Source: Paramoeba atlantica (lineage: Eukaryota > Protista > Discosea). From it: a stretch of DNA of 64,000 nt. The stretch lies in NCBI GenBank assembly GCA_977017575.1, contig CDRNVI010000009.1:1-64000 (forward strand). Reading direction: 5' to 3'. The notes beneath the pieces are model-generated. The model searched no databases. It was not told the origin of the DNA and saw only the letters and a list, made by a program, of their open reading frames with translations. Each line of letters begins with the position of its first letter. Within the stretch, counting starts at the first letter, position 1. Shown here one piece after another: positions 7,635 through 60,632 of the stretch. The translations under genes and the position numbers were made by a program.

Positions 7635-8559
7635 ATTTGTGAACACTAGTCTAGGGATAAATTGCAAAAAAGATAGATAAAAGACTTTTTCTTTTCAAAT
7701 ACTTTTACACTTTTTTGCCTCCACACCACCAAGTCTAACCATTGTACATGAGAAAGTTCGCTTTTGCATAGCGAAGACTTGGAATGCGACTGGACACTAA
7801 TTTTTCGAGCAAAGAAAATGACCTCTTTCGGATTAATTTTTTTGTATAAAAAGTTAGCAATTTTGAGAACCTTTCCACGGCTAAAAGGGTCCCAAAGAGA
7901 GCGGAAGGGCAATAAATTATGCTATTTTTTTTGTGTTTTTTATAAATATTTTGGACCCCCCGAGTGGGGGGTGGGGTGGGGTGATAGCTAAACAAACGGC
8001 GAGAAACGATCTAGTTTTTCGAGATTTGTTGAATGATGCAGGAATTAGGTCAACAGCTCTTACGGTCTGCTCTGGAGCCTGGAGGAACGAGTACTTCGAC
8101 TGTATTTCGAAAAGTCACCCTTTTAAAAAACATTCGTAGTGTATGCACCCTCGCTAGTCCACCTAAATTTTTTATTTGGAGAAAGTACGCCTAAATTGCA
8201 CAAAAAAGATTTTGTTTTTGAATTTGCAGTGCAAAAATAATTTTTTTCTTTCGTGAAATTGAGTGGGTCCAACTGCGCCAGATAACTCCACTCCGCCAGA
8301 CATGTTTTTTATAAAAAAAATTATTGATTTAAAAAAAGAAAAACTTGAGAAGAGGTGCTGCGTTCGTTGAAGGAGGAACTATAAAAGGCGTCTTTTCCGT
8401 GGTCTGGAAATGTAAATAAATTTCCGTGGTCTGGAAATATTGGTTAACCATACACGTACTCCCGCCGGGTAAATAGATATGTAATTGCCCGCTTTACTCC
8501 GCATTTGCACCCCTCTCCAGAAATAATTTCTGGAGAGGTCTTTTGGACAGTCTCATAAT

Positions 8560-9000
8560 TTTAAAAAACAGTTATTCCAAGTGAATCTGAGAATCTTCTA
8601 GAAAAACTAAGCGTTTTAGATTTACCTTGGGATGACGAATGTCGCATTTTGCAGGAGCATGGAGGGGCTGTTCTATCTGCGTTAGATAGAGCTTCGAAAT
8701 CGCAGGACATCGAAACTCCCAAGTTAGGTGGTGTCACGCGTTGGTGCCAGGATAAGTTTGTAACAATGGAGTTCATAGCCAATAATATTAATACCATTAA
8801 TGCGTTTGTAGAAGCCAAACAGAACAAAAAAAAATCGACCTCTCAGTCTATCGTAAAATGCTCAAAACTAATTGCTCGTTACGGGGTCGATGGTATCCGT
8901 GATTCCTGCTCATCATTCCTTAAAGATCGTAAGATTTTGTATGTCGCACTAAACAAATTTTCTGACTTAAATGGGAAACCGACGCCTTCGCGGAGCCATA
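8560..9000 (+). pseudogene. hAT-like transposase fragment, homologue of 57618-59250
   Basis: TPKLGGVTRWCQDKFVTMEFIAN here versus TPKLGGVTRWCSDKFTSMEFLAN near 58760-58830. Confidence 0.65.
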
Positions 9001-9416
9001 TTCTGGAGGGGGGCACAATAATAGAGGTCGGTTCCACTTATTGTGCCCCCCCGGCACAATAAATAGCTATAGGCCCATTAACCCGGAACAGGGTTCAATT
9101 GCCGCGCTCTCGGACACGTACATCCCCAGCTGCGCCAACCGGTTTTCTCCCGGGGGTGGCGAGATGAACCGCCGCGGCGAAAGACGAGCGGCCTTCTAGA
9201 GGGCCCCAAAACCTACTCCCCACCCCAAAAATCTACTCGTGCTTGCTTGTAGAAGAGACGGCGAACAAACCTACCAGACTCTTTAAAAATTTCTTGGAAA
9301 TATGTATGGAATGGGGTTCAGTATGTGAGCACGGAAAAACATCGAAAAATGCTAATTTCAATCGGTGACTAATCAATGCCGAAAAATGGGAAAAAGTGTT
9401 TTTCCTCTCTTCCTGA

Positions 9417-22531: not shown

Positions 22532-23749
22532 AGCTATCGAAACATCCTCCCTCTTCCCCGCGATTCCATCACCGCCGAAAAATATCATCAACTAGTGTGT
22601 CATCTCCTCGGAAATAGCAATGAAACGCATGCGAAAGGAGTGACGATAGGAAGTACAAACTCTCCACTCGACAACACACCGCGTAGTTTATTCAGACTCA
22701 TATGATTGTATTTATTCAAACTCATAGAATTGTGAGCAGCAATTATTCAGTCCCAAGACATAACGTCGGTGGCTCCAGCCAACGCGCGGCGACAGCGATG
22801 CAGTGAGAAGATGTTCGGGACGCAAGATTCGCACAAGGCAATCTGTCAAGGCCACGTGATGGGACTGGGGTACGTCCCCTCCTGACACAAGTTACATTCA
22901 ACCGCTTGTTTACTTCCCTCCGTGTGCAGCAGTTCAATAAAATAATCTTTGCAGAAACTACCCCTCGTAACTTTAGTTTCGGGCATCAATTTTCGGGTTT
23001 AAAAATAAGAAAAATCGTACACAAATGAATTCGCCGTGTATTTATGGTGTGTTGGTGAGCTTCGGAGTGCTTAAAATGTGAAACAAAAAAATATAGTTTT
23101 TTATAGTTTTCAAAAAAAGTTTATAGTAACTATATAGTACTATATTGATAGTTTTATAGTTTCTGCGAACCCTGGAAAAAAATATGAAAGGGGGCTCTGA
23201 TGGTCCAAAACTGAAAAAAAAATTGAATAAAATGGGGGGTCCATGGGGGGGGTCCAGGGGGGTGGTCCAGGGGGGGGTCCAGGGGGGGGGGTCATGGTCG
23301 AGCAAATTTTTTCGAAAAAATTATGGGGGTTTCCCCCCAACTAACTTCTACAACTCCTATCCCTCTCTCTGTCTGTATTCGTTTATTCCGCAAGTACAAG
23401 GAGTCGCGTCCCGAGGTTTCAAAGGCAGAAAAGATAAATGTTATCCCCAGGGACGTGCGCACTATTCAGCATGACATGAGAATTCTTGCTGATTGTGTGT
23501 GGTTAAACATTCGCGAGACCATAGACGATCCATAGATATTTGGGCTTGCGATTGATGCTGGAATGGACTCCGTCCTGCACGAACACGTCTTGGTTGCTGT
23601 ATTTATGTGGGGTCGCACCGGCGGCTGACTCCACCAATGTGTCATCCAAAGTCCAGCGCCTTTAATGGGAAAGAGACAGCAGAAATATTTGTTTCTTCAG
23701 AAATATCTTCAAAGGACTAGAATAGGGGGGGTATGGGGGTCAAACTTAC

Positions 23750-24330
23750 ACACACACTTTTTTGTTCAAAATTGTTTTCGGTCATCCCAAAAATCCCTCC
23801 ATGCCCCCCTCCCTGGACCCCCCATGCCTCCATGCCCCCCCATAGACCCCCCTTTTCTTCAATTTTCTTTTTCGGTTTTTGTGTAACGGGGCCCCCTTTA
23901 ATTTTTTTTATTCTATTACTGTACCCCCCCCCCGTTTATAATAGCCTCGCTTTTGCCCAAACCTATAAGGGGGGAGGGCGATTAAAAGTTGGCACAGGAA
24001 TCGCCTTACATTTGTGAGCGAGGAACCAGTAATTATCCAATCGCTAAGTGGGCCCCGGCGCTCTGCCAAAGTAAAATGACCAGCACGACCCCTCGAAGAA
24101 CCATGTGAAAATAAATATCAAACTATTTAAGACGGCGCAAGAAAATTTAAAAAAATCTTCCTCGGTTTGCCCAAAAAAACCTATAAAGAGGGGGTGGGGG
24201 GGAGGGGTCGAGGCTATTATAAACAGGGGGGGGGGTACAGTATATTACAGTGTTCCTCTTTATATTTTCACTGTTTTTGTTCACTTTCTTTCAATAATCA
24301 AGGGTAGAGAGATAGTTATACAACCACCGC
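23750..24330 (-). mobile_element. Diverged inverted copy of repeat A, interrupted at 23919-24240
   Basis: Ends ...gatagttatacaaccaccgc, the reverse complement of the repeat A start. Confidence 0.65.
23919..24240. mobile_element. CTGT-terminated MITE with TA TSD
   Basis: ta|ctgtacccccccccc gtttataatagcctcg...cgaggctattataaacagggggggggtacag|ta. Empty repeat A copies read tctattatattac, so TA was duplicated. Confidence 0.85.
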
Positions 24331-26848: not shown

Positions 26849-27226
26849 TTTTCTCGAATACGTGGTTGTAGAAAATAAATAGAAACTTTGATATTAAGTA
26901 ACGCGTTCGGTATAATGCAGTGATTCGCTTCATGGCGGAAGCCACATTACTGTACCCGGGTACAGTTATTATTGTCAAAAGTTTTGACAATAATATGATG
27001 ATTTGGCAATAATAACGTGATTTGGAAATAATAGGAAGCTTTGCATCATATTATTGTCAAAAGTAGAGGAAGCCCACCATTTTTAAAGTATTTTTAAGTA
27101 AAACCTAGAAAGCACAGTATCAATGATCAATGGGGAAAGCAGTTTCGAATTCAGAAAAGCCCAGAATCTTTTTTTTCTCGATTAAGAATGAATTAATAAG
27201 GCTTTAGCAAGCATAGGCATAGAGAT

Positions 27227-35846: not shown

Positions 35847-36027
35847 CTGTTCCCCCCGTTTAAGCGCACCTCGTTTTCCGTGAAAAGTGCGCTTAAACGG
35901 GAGGGGGTCTGAATCACTACACAAAAAAAAAGTGGCGCCGCTTTGCGGCCCCCGGCTCTGCACCTCAACTATGTATGTGTGCTTAAACGGGGGGTCCGAC
36001 CGTGTGCGCTTAAGGGGAGGAGGACAG
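35847..36027. mobile_element. Small CTGT-family MITE
   Basis: ctgttccccccgtttaagcgcac / gtgcgcttaaggggaggaggacag|ta, internal gtgcgcttaa repeats and a GC hairpin; left flank is tg rather than ta. Confidence 0.6.
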
Positions 36028-44365: not shown

Positions 44366-44639
44366 ACGATGTTTGTCTCTATTAAAGGGGGGGCTCAAAT
44401 GAGAATCCGAAACAAGAAAAACAAAAATCGGCGCCGCTTCGTGGCGCCTTTTTCCCAAGCCTTAAATATATGCACATGTGAGGGTCCTTTTACAACTACT
44501 CAGAATAGTAAACATGTAGTACTCAGAGTAGTAAACATGTTTTACAGAAACGGTATATTTATCGTTGGAGCAGCTGTTCTACTCATGTTTCTGCGTAATA
44601 AGGACTGCTACTAGCGCAAAGTAAACGAGAAAATAAAAG

Positions 44640-45100
44640 CGCAAGAACGCTGTTACAGTTTTCTTAGGGTTGGTATCCATAATTTGGGGTTGGGCGCATC
44701 CGATCGGTGCGAGCGTATAGCCCTGTACTACTCCATTGACGAAAACAGCAGTCCCATCACCGAAGAACGCAAATCTGTAGCGGCGAACTGCATTTTGACT
44801 ATACAGTTTTTCTGCCTGTGCGATGCCTCAACGTCTATGCGTCCGATCGCCTCAACGTCAATGCGATGCTCAACGTCTGCAGGGGCAAGGCACTGAGTTC
44901 TTTCCCAACGCAGCCACACCCACCCGTAATACTTTCGAAAAAACAAATACGTCTCTTCGAGTGCGTTTACGGATGTCAGACCTGTGTGCTCTCGAATCAT
45001 ATCCATAACGATGGTTTTGGTAAGAGGGCACGAGAGGGAAGAAGCTTGCTCGCATGCGCGATGTACGCGTTCCATAGCAACTGCTTTACTGTACGTTATG
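44640..45100 (-). pseudogene. pogo-like transposase remnant (CENP-B-type HTH region)
   Basis: CPLTKTIVMDMI...FFRKYYG and downstream YTLAPIG, compared with RTLAPKG in the 55-kb pogo remnant. Confidence 0.45.
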
Positions 45101-46036
45101 GGCTCCGCGTCATTATAATCCCCCCTCTTCCATTAAAACCGCGATTTCTGCAGCTGCCGCCCATGGAACGATTGATCAAGTTTTGATAATGTTTCGCTCC
45201 TCGGTTGCGTATTTTGTACAAGGCACTTCGATAGAGTCTGTACTTATTCTGTATCTTGGATACCGGCGATTTCGACAGGCATATATCGCGCTTGTCATAC
45301 ATACTTAACTCTACTCGCTCTCTCTTTTCACGGACAGTGCTTGGAAGAGGATTATTTGTTATTTCGAGTGTCGGATTCCGATTCGTGGCGCTGGAAGTTC
45401 TGTAATAATCCAGGAGCTTAGAGACCCACACAAAGAACGAACTGTGTTGGGAATACCATCTTTCAATTTCACAGGTGGATGATAGCATTGGTAGAGATTC
45501 TTGAACGTTCGGTGAATTCTAAGTATTTTTCCTCCCATTTTAAGCAACATCCCAATTTTTTCTCTACTTTCGCCAAAAAATACCCCCCAAACAAATTCCC
45601 CCAAAAATTTGTCTCTAATAAAGGGGGGGATGAGGGGGGTCTCTATTAAAGTGGGGGCCACATTATGTATTCTTATTTCTACATGTATGTATATTCTATT
45701 ACACATGTCATATGTATTCTATCGTACGATACTTGACCACACAAGTATTGTACATAAATTTTTTGTAAAAGTAAAACGAATCCGATAGAGCAGTGATGAA
45801 TAGTTCGTCTCATGAAATGTCTCGATTTCAAAAAAAAGTTTGTAGAATAGTTTTTTTATTTTTCGTTCATTGCTTTGACCCGCGCCTCTTGCGAGCGTGG
45901 GCATGAGCGGGTGCCGTATATTCTGAGGGGAGACAAGTTCCACTGCCGGCAAACCAATTTCTGATTGATGACTGATGGCGATTGTTTCCTTCTCTTATAG
46001 CATGCAAAAATCTGAAGTTTACAGACTGAGGTATTT

Positions 46037-54479: not shown

Positions 54480-55015
54480 ATTGAAATGTGAAACTGAAAA
54501 ACTCCAAAAACCTCGTTAGAAGATGGTTTGGCGATAATTGGAAGACGAAAATGTTCCTCAATGTTGGTCGCAGACCACACACTTACGAGAGGTTCCGCAA
54601 GCGTTTTTAATCTTTTTAGAGAGTTATACATGTGTAATTATTAATGAGAGTAGTAAATATTAGGAAAGTAGAAACTAGAAAACTAAATCATGCTCCGGGT
54701 TTATAAACCTACCAGGTACAATACATGTACGTCTGTATTCAGGGGTGAGCACGAATAGTGCGTTAGAGAGCTCTCGCAGAGTTACGCCTTTTTTACCTTT
54801 TCTTGTGGTGACACATACTGTGCCCCCCCACTTACATGCCCCCCCACTTATTGTATTTGTCACCTGTTTTTCGAAAAAAAGGGACAAATAAGTAGGGGGG
54901 GGGTTAGGCTATGACAATTAAGTGGGGGTCAAAATACTTTTATAAACCCCCGTCCGGGTTAATGTACCCCCCCGGTACAGTAACTAGATACAGGTACAAT
55001 ACGTCGCGACCGGTA

Positions 55016-56560
55016 CAGTAAAACCTCCGAAAAATAACGAAAATAGTGAAAAAAAAACTGGTGACGCATCTCTATTCTCATGTCTTCGCTGGTAAAATAA
55101 AAAGGCCATGATAACGAAGGCAGGTAGCAAAAGTAAGCGGCTGCGGAAATTTAATCACGACAGGGAAGTGCACGGGAAATTGTGCTCTATATTACAGAGA
55201 CATTGTATGATTACTAAGGAAATGGTTCATGATGCCATGCAAAAATATGGCGCCTTCTCAGAAGGTCTTCCGATAGGGGAAAAGAGCGTATCTACAAAAA
55301 GTTTAAGATTTTTTTTGAATCACAGGAAAAGCATCACATATCTCAGAGCAAAATCGCCGACAGAATACAGCAATAGGCAAATCACTTGTATACTCAGCAT
55401 AGTGTCAGAAACTATCCATACGCGTTTTTCGGAGATGAAACAAGTTTGAGCGTCGGTGGGGAGGTCCGCGAACGAACCCTTGCTCCAAAAGGTGTGCACA
55501 ATGTAAGAGTGAGTGGAAATAATGCCAAGGAAACTCTTACCGTTTTTCTTGCTCGCCTGTACGACATAAAAGAAAAAAGGGTCTACCGGCTTCCACCTAC
55601 CATCATTTTCACTTCATCAGCACAGGAAGCAGCAAAATCGCGTGTCCTACATTGTACAGGAAGTTACCCGTATAGCGGGCACCATGAACCACGCGGTATA
55701 CGTCGAAGTAACTAATTCAGGGTACATCTTTTCACTCATCTTTTAAAAAAATATATTAACAACATCAGTGGTCATAAACCGCCGACTGCGATTTTGGTGG
55801 ATGATTACACAGCACATCGTACCACAGACCTACAAACTGCGACATGCATCGCGTTCCCGGTGCTGGTACTCCCTATAGTCAAGGAAAAAGGGATATACAA
55901 GGAAAAATATAAATATTTCATCAACAATTTTAAAAAACAGCGAGTGAAAAAGGGATGACCCTCTTCCGGCTAGCCTTTACGGCCTTCGGAATCCCGGGTA
56001 ACATGACACTCTCCCTTTTACGTAAATTGGGGAGACAAGCAACCAACCCATCGGGCTTCATGGAGCACGCCATCATGTCCATCGGCGTCCCCATCCAGCG
56101 CGGAAACGCTCAGATGTTGAGAGCTGCCGCGGCAATGAAGGTGGGGGACACGGTGTGGTAGGGATTCTGAAGAGGAATCTTGTTTATTAAATTTACATCT
56201 ATCGCACCTTTTTGTTATGAAGGGTTGAATAATTCTTGCCTCCATCGTGGTCTAATTCACCTCTTGTAAATAGTTTTTCTTTGAAATGAATAGGCTTATC
56301 TTCCAGAGATTTTAAGAGAATTTACCATCGCGCACTGAAGAAGTGGAAGGCTGAATATCCGTCCATTAGAAAAGTGCCCAGAGCGGTATTCATGAATCTT
56401 ATTTACTACGCTCATGAAAAAACATGGGAGTGGTACCGCGAAAGAAATATTAAAATTTCAACTCAGTTAATTTTCAATCCACTGACTAGTCACCAGTGGA
56501 GTTGGAATGATTGTAATGTCCCATCTTCAGAAGAGAAAATTAAACAGAAGCAAGATCATG
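55016..56560 (+). pseudogene. pogo-like (DDE_1) transposon remnant, interrupted
   Basis: ta|cagtaaaacctccg left end; FFGDETSL, RTLAPKG...KETLTVFLA...LPPTIIF, ILVDDYTAH, then FKRIYHRALKKW...PRAVFMNL after the CRE fragment. Confidence 0.7.
55940..56161 (+). mobile_element. 3' fragment of a second CRE-like retrotransposon
   Basis: LAFTAFGIPG..TL.LLRKLG...FMEHAI..I.VPIQRGNAQML matches the C-terminus of 31872-33863. Confidence 0.75.
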
Positions 56561-57310: not shown

Positions 57311-57317
57311 TTACTTA

Positions 57318-59379
57318 CTGTGACCCCCCCTTTAATATGCACACGTTTTTGGGGTTTGTGCATATTAAGGGGGGGGGGGGGGTAAGAGGGGGAAGAACCA
57401 GCCCCTCCGGGAAAAAAATTGCGCCGCTTCGCGGCGCCTTTATTTCCTGTGCGTTTTTCGAACTTGATTGATTGATTGATTTTAAGGGCATGTATCCCAT
57501 AGGGACGTACCCTCCCGGAGATAGCCGGGCACTAATTTTATTATTATTCCAAAATACACTTATTATTCCAATTTTTTTAGTATTCTGCCACCTGAAAGTT
57601 TTCTCAAATTATATTCCATGGATGCCTTTGTGCCTGGCTACATAGAGAATCTTTTGTATCTATCTTTAGAGAATGCACAAGAACGGCGCGGCTACGGCCT
57701 AGGGATCGTAGAAGGCTCAAGCGATGACGATAGTGAAGTGAATTCTGTTTCTTCCGATGAAGAACATGGTAGCGATATAAAAAATGTTAGCCTCGAAACC
57801 CCTGATGGGGTTCTACCACTGATGACGGCAGTGATAACGAGGAAGGTTTGGTTGATTCCAGTGGGGCCCGTAAAGTAAAAGTTGCCAAGCGTTCTAGAGT
57901 CGTTCTAGATTCTCGGAGAAACGTACGCCGCGATGTTCCTTTCGTTGTGAAGCATAAGACTGTTTTCAAAACAGAAATGGCGAACTATGTCTCAAACGCA
58001 CCACAAAGCTATGGCAACAGCACAACAATGGATGAGAAGAACCTTTGGTGAATTATACACAGTGCATTCTAAATCTCAACTAAAAGAGTGGGATGCAGAA
58101 ATCAACCGGCAACTTTCCAGTAACCTAGGCGAGGAACGCCTGCTAAAGCTTAAGTTCTTGATGGTGGATGGCGCCACTGTCAACCATGTTGCCCGTGTGA
58201 ATTGCGAAGGTTTCTTAAAATCCATTTACGATCGTATTGACCCGGTGGGAGAAGAGGACCTAGGAAACATACAGCGCGGAATAAATCAAAAGTACCGTGT
58301 GTCACTATTATCTTGTATAGGACACATGTTAAATAATGTCTGCAAAACGGCGTTTCAACCCTACGAATCGTCTCCAGCCTTTAAATTTAAAAGAAGCTTT
58401 TCGAAGGCCTTTTTTTCATGGGGCAAGGCGAGTGCCACAAAGGGAAAATACAGAGGAATTGCTTTATCCCACTTGCTGGTACGATTCGATTCCAACGTAA
58501 TGCGAGCTGAGGCACTTCTAAAGCAGTGCTACCTGGTTCTTGGAACAATTTCTCCGACAGCATGGAAAACCAATTTGGCGGAAAAGTTGTGCGAAAGCCT
58601 TTGTGTGCTCAAGCAAGTGATACTACAAGAAGTTAGTGAAGTGCAGGAGAAACTTTTGAACCTTGGGGAAAACGATTTCCAGGAAAAACATCGAGTATTT
58701 TCAGAGTGTGGTCCAAAATTTTTGAACACCATGACCAGTGCTCGCATGTAGCATGGCGTCGTTACTCCGAAACTTGGAGGGGTTACTCGCTGGTGCTCCG
58801 ACAAGTTCACGTCCATGGAATTTCTGGCAAACTATTTGCAAACTATTCAGTTATTCATCGAAGAAGCGAAAAAAGGGCCACGAGATTCTAATTCCATTAA
58901 GCGGTGTCAAAAAATCTTGACTAAATACGGCTCACAATGCATTCAGAAGCAGTGTGAAATTTTTTTGAGCGAATGTAGTGAACTACATGCGGCACTCAAG
59001 GAATTTAGTGAAAGCAAGGATACTCCTATGGCCACACACGTTTGCCAAATGTTGGAGCATCTATACGAAATTTCCGAAGGTACAGGAGCACCACAAGGAT
59101 TACGATCATCCCTTTTGCACCACAAGAAAAGACTAGATAAGAATCATAACATGCGTCTCTGGAAACAGGTAATGTGGTTTCGACCAAGTTGGGTTGTCCT
59201 GTTCGGTCGGCCAATACGTCAACATGCTTTGTGATATTGGCGAACTGAAATTTTGTCTGCGCAACCACCGTGAAAAAAAAATATTTTTTTTTTGGGAGGA
59301 AAAAAAGTCCCCTTTCACCAAAATTTGTGCATATTAAGGGGGGGAGGGAAGGGGGTGCATATTAAGGGGGGGGTCACAG
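57318..59379 (+). mobile_element. 2062-bp CTGT-terminated, TA-flanked element
   Basis: ta|ctgtgaccccccctttaatatgcac...gtgcatattaaggggggggtcacag|ta; the gtgcatattaagggggg motif occurs twice at each end. Confidence 0.85.
57618..59250 (+). pseudogene. hAT-like DDE transposase, frameshifted
   Basis: VVLDS, LMVDGATVN, SCIGHMLNN (CxxH) and GVTRW in hAT order, across three or more frames. Confidence 0.65.
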
Positions 59380-59410
59380 TATATACTTTACATTGGAAAA
59401 AGTATTATTA

Positions 59411-60343
59411 AACCCCTCCGCATCAAAAAGGCACCCACCCTTATTTTTCGCACAAGGGGGGCTAGGGGGGTTATCGCACCACTTTATCGTGCAAAATTTT
59501 GAGATCTGTACATTCCCGTTGTCTTTAGGTCATTTCGAAAAATATAAAAAAGTTGAAGGTATGTTTTAAAAAAAAACACTTTTCATGCCAAAAAATACGT
59601 ATCGACTCCCCAGGGGTGGTCTTACAGAAAGTGGAAAAGTGTTATGGCGCATGAGGCTTGGCCACGGGGTTGCGATAAGGTAACTAGCCCGCGGGTTTAA
59701 TGTCAATGTGAAACATATTGGAAAATATTTGAAAAACAATTCGCCTGAAATTCTTTACACTCTGAGCCCTGAAGTAAAAAAAGAATCCAAAGACACTTTG
59801 TTATTCTTCCATCCAACTCAATTACATGTGTTTCGTACATTAAAACATTAAAAAAAGTACCATTCACCACAAACTGTATTTTTCAGCAAGATGGGGCAAC
59901 ACCTCACACTGCGAAGGAAACAAAAGCGTACCTTGATGACAACAAAATGAAATTTTTGAAAAATTAGCCGCCCAACTCCCCCGATCTCTCACCAATAGAA
60001 AGCGTGTGGAGCATGGTACAAAGTCTTGTAGATGAATACAATCCGGCAAATAAAGAAGATCTCATAAAAAGCGTACGTAAAGCTTGGCGTAAATTGTCTC
60101 AAGATTATATTTATGATTGGGTTTTGAGCTTAGATGCTCGCCTCAAAGCTTGTGTGGCGAGTAACGGAGAAAAGGTGACAAAATGGTAAACTTTCTCTAA
60201 AATATACGTATTCGTTTCTTTTTGTTTCATTTCTTCACGCGCAAAGTCTTTATGTTGAGATCTGCAAAATGCAACAAAAATCAGCCCAAACGGACATTTC
60301 GCTGAAAAGTTAAGGGTGGGTGCCTTATTGGTGCGGAGGGGTT
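59411..60343 (+). mobile_element. Internally deleted Tc1-like element, TA TSD
   Basis: TIR aacccctccgcatc..aaggcacccaccctta / taagggtgggtgcctt..gtgcggaggggtt; inside FQQDGATPHTAKET...N*PPNSPDLSPIESVW. Confidence 0.8.
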
Positions 60344-60632
60344 TATAAGCGTATTCTAAAATCTTGAGCATTTGACATTATTAATTTGATTAGGCATTTG
60401 TTCAAAGAATTTTGTATTTCAACATTCGCTGCAATAGTCCGTAGTCATGCTATGTAGTCATGCTAATAGTCCGTAGTCATGCGTTGTTCATTCTATTAAA
60501 TGATAGTAAAACGTCGAGGGGAAAACAAGTGAAACGTCGAAAATAACCATAACAAAAACGAGAGCGCAAGAGCTATGAGTTCCCTAACACAATGCAGAGC
60601 GCCAATAATCCAACATACAGCACGTTTCTCAA

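Follow-up and report, generated by a model that had tools for sequence, protein, structure and literature searches.

Within the 64,000-nt stretch of DNA analysed here, hereafter the window, a 2062-bp element at positions 57318-59379 is very probably a non-autonomous transposon of the pogo type (IS630-Tc1-mariner), in which the pogo gene has been replaced by unrelated filler and a dead fragment of a hAT transposase gene, and which has been moved in trans by a pogo enzyme. This reading is based on the TA target-site duplication, on ends that are common to elements with a pogo gene, on the lack of pogo coding sequence inside the element, on the incompleteness of the hAT part and on the finding that intact hAT relatives have ends of their own. 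A preliminary description of the window had proposed instead that a hAT-like enzyme with an altered, TA-type target duplication defines a new group of DNA transposons. This proposal fails, as intact pogo-like ORFs are found between the CTGT ends. The alternative that the description had mentioned, in which an element that targets TA captured a hAT gene, is supported by the dead hAT fragment that we find between pogo-type ends. A false lead is thereby removed, since there is no TA-duplicating hAT-like group here, and the case illustrates that the motif content within a transposon does not reveal the enzyme that moves the transposon. What remains is a multicopy chimeric cut-and-paste element that is polymorphic between homologous contigs and carries cargo from a rival superfamily. 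It is one more documented instance in which Tc1-mariner/pogo elements capture and shuffle DNA, and it shows that elements of the pogo type have been mobile in this protist genome.

Structure, target-site duplication and copies of the element

The element is bounded by inverted ends of 25 nt, or 27 nt if the TA is counted, which are 96% complementary (57316-57342 versus 59355-59381). The end motif GTGCATATTAAGGGGGG is present four times in the window, where 0.01 copies are expected by chance, and all four copies lie within the 2062-bp element: one in each terminal repeat, one in inverted subterminal position on the left and one in direct subterminal position on the right. The 3' region bears the end motif twice in direct orientation, at 59327-59343 and, within the right terminal repeat (59355-59379), at 59355-59371. 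On the left about 217 nt of the element derive from the pogo-type family, on the right 136 nt, and these ends enclose about 1.7 kb of foreign filler. The coordinates of the individual features are compiled in Table 1.

Table 1. Features of the 2062-bp element and its flanks (positions in the window; nt, numbering within the element).
Feature	Position	Strand	Remark
TA target-site duplication, left copy	57316..57317		single TA in the empty C4 site; 250 of 266 genomic ends follow TA
Left terminal inverted repeat (CTGTGAC, C-tract, TTTAATATGCAC)	57318..57342	+	also in the autonomous pogo-like element L074
Pogo-type-derived 5' region, nt 1 to about 217	57318..57534	+	inner limit approximate
Subterminal inverted GTGCATATTAAGGGGGG, forming a hairpin-like pair with the left repeat	57357..57376	+	same arrangement in L074 and L075
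Unrelated filler, nt 218-747 (530 nt)	57535..58064	+	no DNA copies beyond the composite family
Dead internal fragment of a hAT-superfamily transposase gene	58065..59231	+	approximately residues 280-665 of an 809-aa paralogue
In-frame TAG within the hAT-like fragment	58749..58751	+	common to all four copies compared at this position
Pogo-type-derived 3' region, nt 1927-2062	59244..59379	+	91-92% identity to other CTGT-ended elements
TA target-site duplication, right copy	59380..59381		from flanking letters and the empty C4 site

When the intact pogo-like element L074 was compared with the element by blastn, matches were limited to nt 1-148 (82% identity) and to nt 2005-2062, the last 58 nt (97% identity); beyond nt 148 a weaker alignment continues to about nt 215-217, and nt 147-217 were found again at other places in the genome. 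We searched the interior of the element for pogo coding sequence and found none. Nor is a hAT terminal repeat or a 6-bp duplication left inside it. The filler contains an ORF of 86 aa, acidic and rich in Ser, but no similarity was detected at the protein level between nt 218-747 and the 24 hAT-like loci or the pogo loci, and a genome search for its source yielded nothing beyond the composite family itself. For the hAT part, the closest free-standing hAT remnant found is about 75% identical in DNA. Pfam assigned no family to the four ORF pieces of the element, the 86-aa ORF included, and Rfam gave no hit over the window.

The genome assembly comprises 45.7 Mb in 248 contigs, the element's own contig being labelled C9. 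Many loci are present twice, on different contigs, and the assembly seems to hold separate haplotypes or large duplications. On contig C4 the sequences that flank the element lie side by side with an overlap of two bases, and the homologous C4 site, read directly, has one TA where C9 has TA-element-TA. This single TA in the empty site proves a 2-bp TA duplication and excludes one of 8 bp, in agreement with the preliminary description, which had recognized a 2062-bp element with inverted ends and TA on both sides and had seen no exact 8-bp duplication. In total we identified seven independent insertions in the genome, all of them with TA on both sides: the full-length copy of the window on C9, a further full-length copy on C59/C26, and derivatives of 2000, 1440, 1090, 937 and 585 bp. 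The copies of the composite element are about 98% identical. The 2000-, 1440-, 1090- and 937-bp derivatives have undergone one internal deletion each and keep both ends, as expected of cut-and-paste elements that are mobilised in trans. The 585-bp copy (L018/L023, C69:94693-95277) is rearranged, with nt 1-208 joined to inverted nt 1-366, so that both of its 'ends' are left ends, yet it is TA-flanked. An older relative with 87-92% identity (L019/L026, C12:560687-561720, with a twin on C2) has nt 435-802 and the 3' end in common with the element; it contains a 515-bp middle of its own and its left end is not detectable. Because nt 435-802 span the junction between filler and hAT-like part in this relative too, the junction must be older than the split of the two lineages.

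The hAT-like cargo and its intact paralogues

The hAT-like part extends over nt 748-1914 and accounts for 57% of the element. The interior is therefore not almost entirely one ORF, as had been described, since nt 218-747 resembles no hAT paralogue. In a tblastn comparison nt 796-1896 aligned with residues 294-660 of the 809-aa protein of locus L044 (49% identity over 368 aa, E 1e-119), and 22 further paralogue ORFs align within nt 748-1914 only. The fragment keeps the second D, the CxxH motif, the helical insertion domain and TRW. It has neither a zinc finger nor the first D, and no C-terminal domain with the third acidic residue; about 280 residues are missing at the N-terminus and about 145 at the C-terminus, two of the three catalytic positions included. 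With regard to the motifs listed in the preliminary description, DGA..N, CxxH and TRW are indeed present, while the region of the first catalytic D is absent. The defect in the hAT-like part is the in-frame TAG at 58749 and not a frameshift, as had been stated there, and since this TAG is common to all four copies compared, the fragment was already dead when the family spread. A second piece of related sequence, noted before at about 8560-9000, was recovered as a hAT-like fragment at 8454-9008.

Assignment of the cargo to the hAT superfamily, at first a guess from motifs, was borne out by a structure model that matches Hermes and by distant relatives with a hAT dimerisation domain. Sequence searches with the intact 809-aa protein contributed little: Pfam assigned no family, a PDB sequence search with the protein and with a five-sequence profile yielded nothing meaningful, and in a word-based search the sole matches among 5.8 billion proteins were two that are 99% identical to the query (ENA records). 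A protein atlas hinted at hAT. An exhaustive profile search with the 809-aa family gave only 189 matches in 1.84 billion representative proteins, and in 5 of 10 distant full-length relatives from this profile search the Pfam domain Dimer_Tnp_hAT (PF05699) scored at or above the cut-off. A first AlphaFold2 model from the five-sequence alignment was too poor for use (pLDDT 48.9), whereas an alignment of 25 sequences from the profile search led to a model with a mean pLDDT of 79.6 and a pTM of 0.68. With this model, the top 11 Foldseek hits were all Hermes transposase (E 2e-7, probability 1.00, target TM-score 0.58-0.66), followed by the P element transposase (E 6.6e-4). The cargo is derived from a divergent hAT lineage, for which the model predicts a Hermes-like fold with an RNase H core and a helical insertion domain.

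The alignment of the paralogues shows conserved acidic residues at D245/D249, D312 and D748, the pair C362xxH365 and the triplet T518-R519-W520. In hAT enzymes the catalytic Glu is part of an SER motif; judged from the alignment, the paralogues appear to have Asp (CDSWLS) at the corresponding position.

The intact paralogues are located in elements of their own with CATACCCCTGCCGGGTAAATGGG (CATACCCC, CATACCCCTGCC...) ends, which are accompanied by 6-bp target duplications. Five of these are exact (TAAAGA, GTGATC, TAGAAT, TATTTA and ATTACT) and one more agrees in five of six positions. The lineage with CATACCCCTGCC ends and 6-bp duplications comprises L044:509-3459 (C71), L042, L045, L049, L050 and L051. 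When ends and duplications were sought in other hAT lineages by a generic search, a single uncertain candidate (L056) emerged. At none of the 24 hAT-like loci (0/24) is the ORF enclosed by ends of the type TA followed by CTGT and a C-tract.

The proposed CTGT-ended partner and possible origins of the chimera

Ends of the type CTGTGACCCCCC are abundant, with 266 occurrences in the genome compared to none for a control pattern. Several plus/minus pairs of these ends are spaced 2.3-3.1 kb apart, two of which (L074 and L075) were read, and the pogo-like ORF matches obtained when the genome was searched with protein lie inside at least ten of the CTGT-end pairs (C26, two on C4, C1, C19, C20, C7, C27 and two on C30). 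L074 (C26:367097-370021, 2925 bp) is TA-flanked and has the terminal repeat, the left hairpin and the two right-hand motif copies arranged as in the element. It carries an intact pogo-like ORF of 771 aa on the minus strand (L074:617-2929; C26:367613-369925), whereas L075 is a frameshifted copy. The 771-aa ORF matches Pfam DDE_1 with 29.1 bits, where the cut-off is 22. Assigned by motif and not by structure, the acidic residues D272, D393/394 and D424 of this protein correspond to a DD29-30D signature. A check for CENP-B_N and HTH_Tnp_Tc5 brought up only a weak match to HTH_28 (E 0.15). The protein is further extended at its C-terminus by about 200 aa, which show an H..D..C pattern (NNHFFF..., FDSYEGY, NECGIH) and by eye look like a cysteine protease of the Ulp1/SENP type; this tail gave no match to Pfam Peptidase_C48 and no relative in a PDB sequence search. 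More unusual than the chimera are its two parent families, a pogo family with a protease-like tail and a DDD-type hAT family that duplicates 6 bp.

We propose that the 771-aa pogo-like transposase of full-length elements, L074 being one example, would excise the 2062-bp element and reinsert it at TA in trans, and that it would do so by binding the terminal and subterminal GTGCATATTAAGGGG motifs which both have in common. The hAT fragment would be passive and play no role in movement. L074 may not belong to the exact subfamily that supplies the transposase, as the left 148 nt of the element are just 82-84% identical to the autonomous copies sampled. The chimera would have formed once, either through template switching while a pogo element was repaired or replicated, or through insertion of a hAT element into it and later deletions, and would then have spread and given rise to its own internal-deletion derivatives.

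The presence of hAT-like motifs inside an element with a proven TA duplication could also be taken to mean that the element is a mutated, once autonomous member of a new group, in which a hAT-like transposase acts on CTGT ends and produces 2-bp TA duplications. Duplication length does vary in the clade, since the related hAT lineage departs from the 8-bp rule with its 6 bp. We nevertheless consider such a group extremely improbable: the fragment is without both protein termini and two of the three catalytic positions, the stop codon is found in all four copies compared there, no longer hAT version with CTGT ends was detected among 149 scored hAT-like matches or 24 inspected loci, and identical ends enclose intact pogo-like genes. 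The intact hAT-like copies, for their part, have CATACCCCTGCC... ends and 6-bp duplications. Membership in Kolobok, PIF/Harbinger or Mirage/CMC was rejected as well, the ends being common with pogo-coding elements. Kolobok requires TTAA and PIF/Harbinger duplicates 3 bp; Mirage/CMC elements duplicate 2 bp and have a transposase of their own.

Regarding the way in which the hAT fragment came to lie between pogo-type ends, a full hAT-like element may have inserted into a pogo-type element, after which deletions took away the hAT ends and termini together with the pogo gene and the residue transposed on. Nesting is common in this genome, pieces of pogo, hAT and miniature elements adjoin in the window, and internal deletions are frequent in the composite family. 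The nested route is possible but rather doubtful to us, because it should have passed through several separate deletions, neither a hAT terminal repeat or 6-bp duplication nor a pogo coding remnant is left in the element, and the 530-nt filler is foreign to both the pogo and the hAT element. A different question is whether the cargo was kept for a function. Truncated P-element proteins act as repressors, and by analogy the truncated hAT ORF of 254 aa (57987-58751) might have been retained as a regulator, namely a dominant-negative form or repressor of the resident hAT, and spread by the pogo machinery. In four of the five copies that retain it this frame is open, and it covers the second D, CxxH and the greater part of the helical insertion domain. 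At about 98% identity among copies, however, an open frame of this length is expected without selection, one copy has a TGA, and several derivatives spread despite deletion of the region, which makes retention as a regulator very unlikely. That the frame would encode a truncated hAT protein which interferes with or regulates the resident DDD-type hAT family we regard as highly improbable; if it were true, one transposon family would spread a disabling piece of its competitor through the genome.

Comparison with known systems and neighbouring features

The element belongs to a known kind, the non-autonomous Tc1-mariner/pogo elements that have captured filler. A study of Pack-TIRs described 115 TcMariner Pack-TIRs in animals and proposed gap filling or fork switching with subsequent transposition as their origin (Tan et al. 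2021, PMC8277862). Like these, the element at 57318-59379 consists of TIR-transposon ends and subterminal sequence around unrelated DNA, is found in several copies with distinct target duplications and presumably moves by a transposase supplied in trans. It differs in that the filler includes a 1.2-kb piece of the transposase gene of another transposon in place of host sequence, that the filler measures about 1.7 kb compared to a median of 224 bp, that it is multicopy, which is rare among Pack-TIRs (1.4%; PMC8277862), and that its host is a protist.

Pogo elements are 1.2-5.2 kb long and encode transposases of 300-977 aa with a DDE_1 domain and a DD29-56D signature, and they generate a classical TA duplication (Gao et al. 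2020, PMC7386202). The TA duplication and the terminal repeats of not more than 40 bp agree with this superfamily, and the partner L074, with its DDE_1 domain, DD29-30D, 2.9 kb and 771 aa, falls within the published ranges throughout (PMC7386202). In contrast to typical members, the element itself has no pogo gene, its ends begin with CTGTGAC followed by a C-tract, and the partner protein bears the long C-terminal extension which by eye resembles a Ulp1-type protease. With the hAT superfamily (Hermes, Ac, hobo) only the cargo has features in common: the model of its protein family matches Hermes over approximately 690 columns, the family has CxxH and (S/T)RW, and distant relatives have the hAT dimerisation domain. 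Unlike in hAT elements, this cargo is merely an internal fragment that sets neither the ends of the element nor its duplication (2-bp TA versus 5-8 bp), and even the intact paralogues deviate by their 6-bp rather than 8-bp duplications and by the apparent Asp in place of the catalytic Glu of the SER motif, as read from the alignment.

Pogo-like proteins of the Emigrant/Lemi1 system of Arabidopsis are reported to bind terminal and subterminal repeated motifs of the system's miniature elements (PMC1636448). Short end motifs common to an autonomous pogo-like element and its non-autonomous derivatives are a shared trait, while motif sequence and host differ. In kinetoplastids, Merlin was the only type of DNA transposon reported in PMC8101967.

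Several further mobile elements or fragments were found in the window. Related ends with CTGT and a C-tract had been listed at five places, of which 23919/24240, 54818 and 63098 could be reproduced, whereas the position at 35847 is not preceded by TA and the one at 26950 has no C-tract. The first of these is a 322-bp miniature element (23919-24240) with TA on both sides and ends of the form TA followed by CTGTACCCCCCCCCC; its ends follow the pogo-type design but belong to a different subfamily. A hAT-like N-terminal fragment is located directly upstream of it (23329-23699). Two decayed pogo-like transposase fragments are present at 44531-45460 (minus strand) and 54818-55838, one of which is 55-59% identical to L074 and the other 36%. 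The 36%-identical fragment (55260-55838) contains an FFGDET motif and lies behind its own end, TA followed by CTGTGCCCCCCC, at 54818. From 63098 to the end of the window extends the left end of another TA-flanked CTGTGACCCCCCCC element with a different subterminal motif, the right end of which lies beyond the window. The DNA immediately to the right of the insertion (59409-60345) is itself repetitive, being present in at least 40 copies with 85-98% identity. Its first 35 nt are found again in inverted orientation at 60311-60345, as in a miniature element, which would here be about 940 bp long and bounded by inverted ends.
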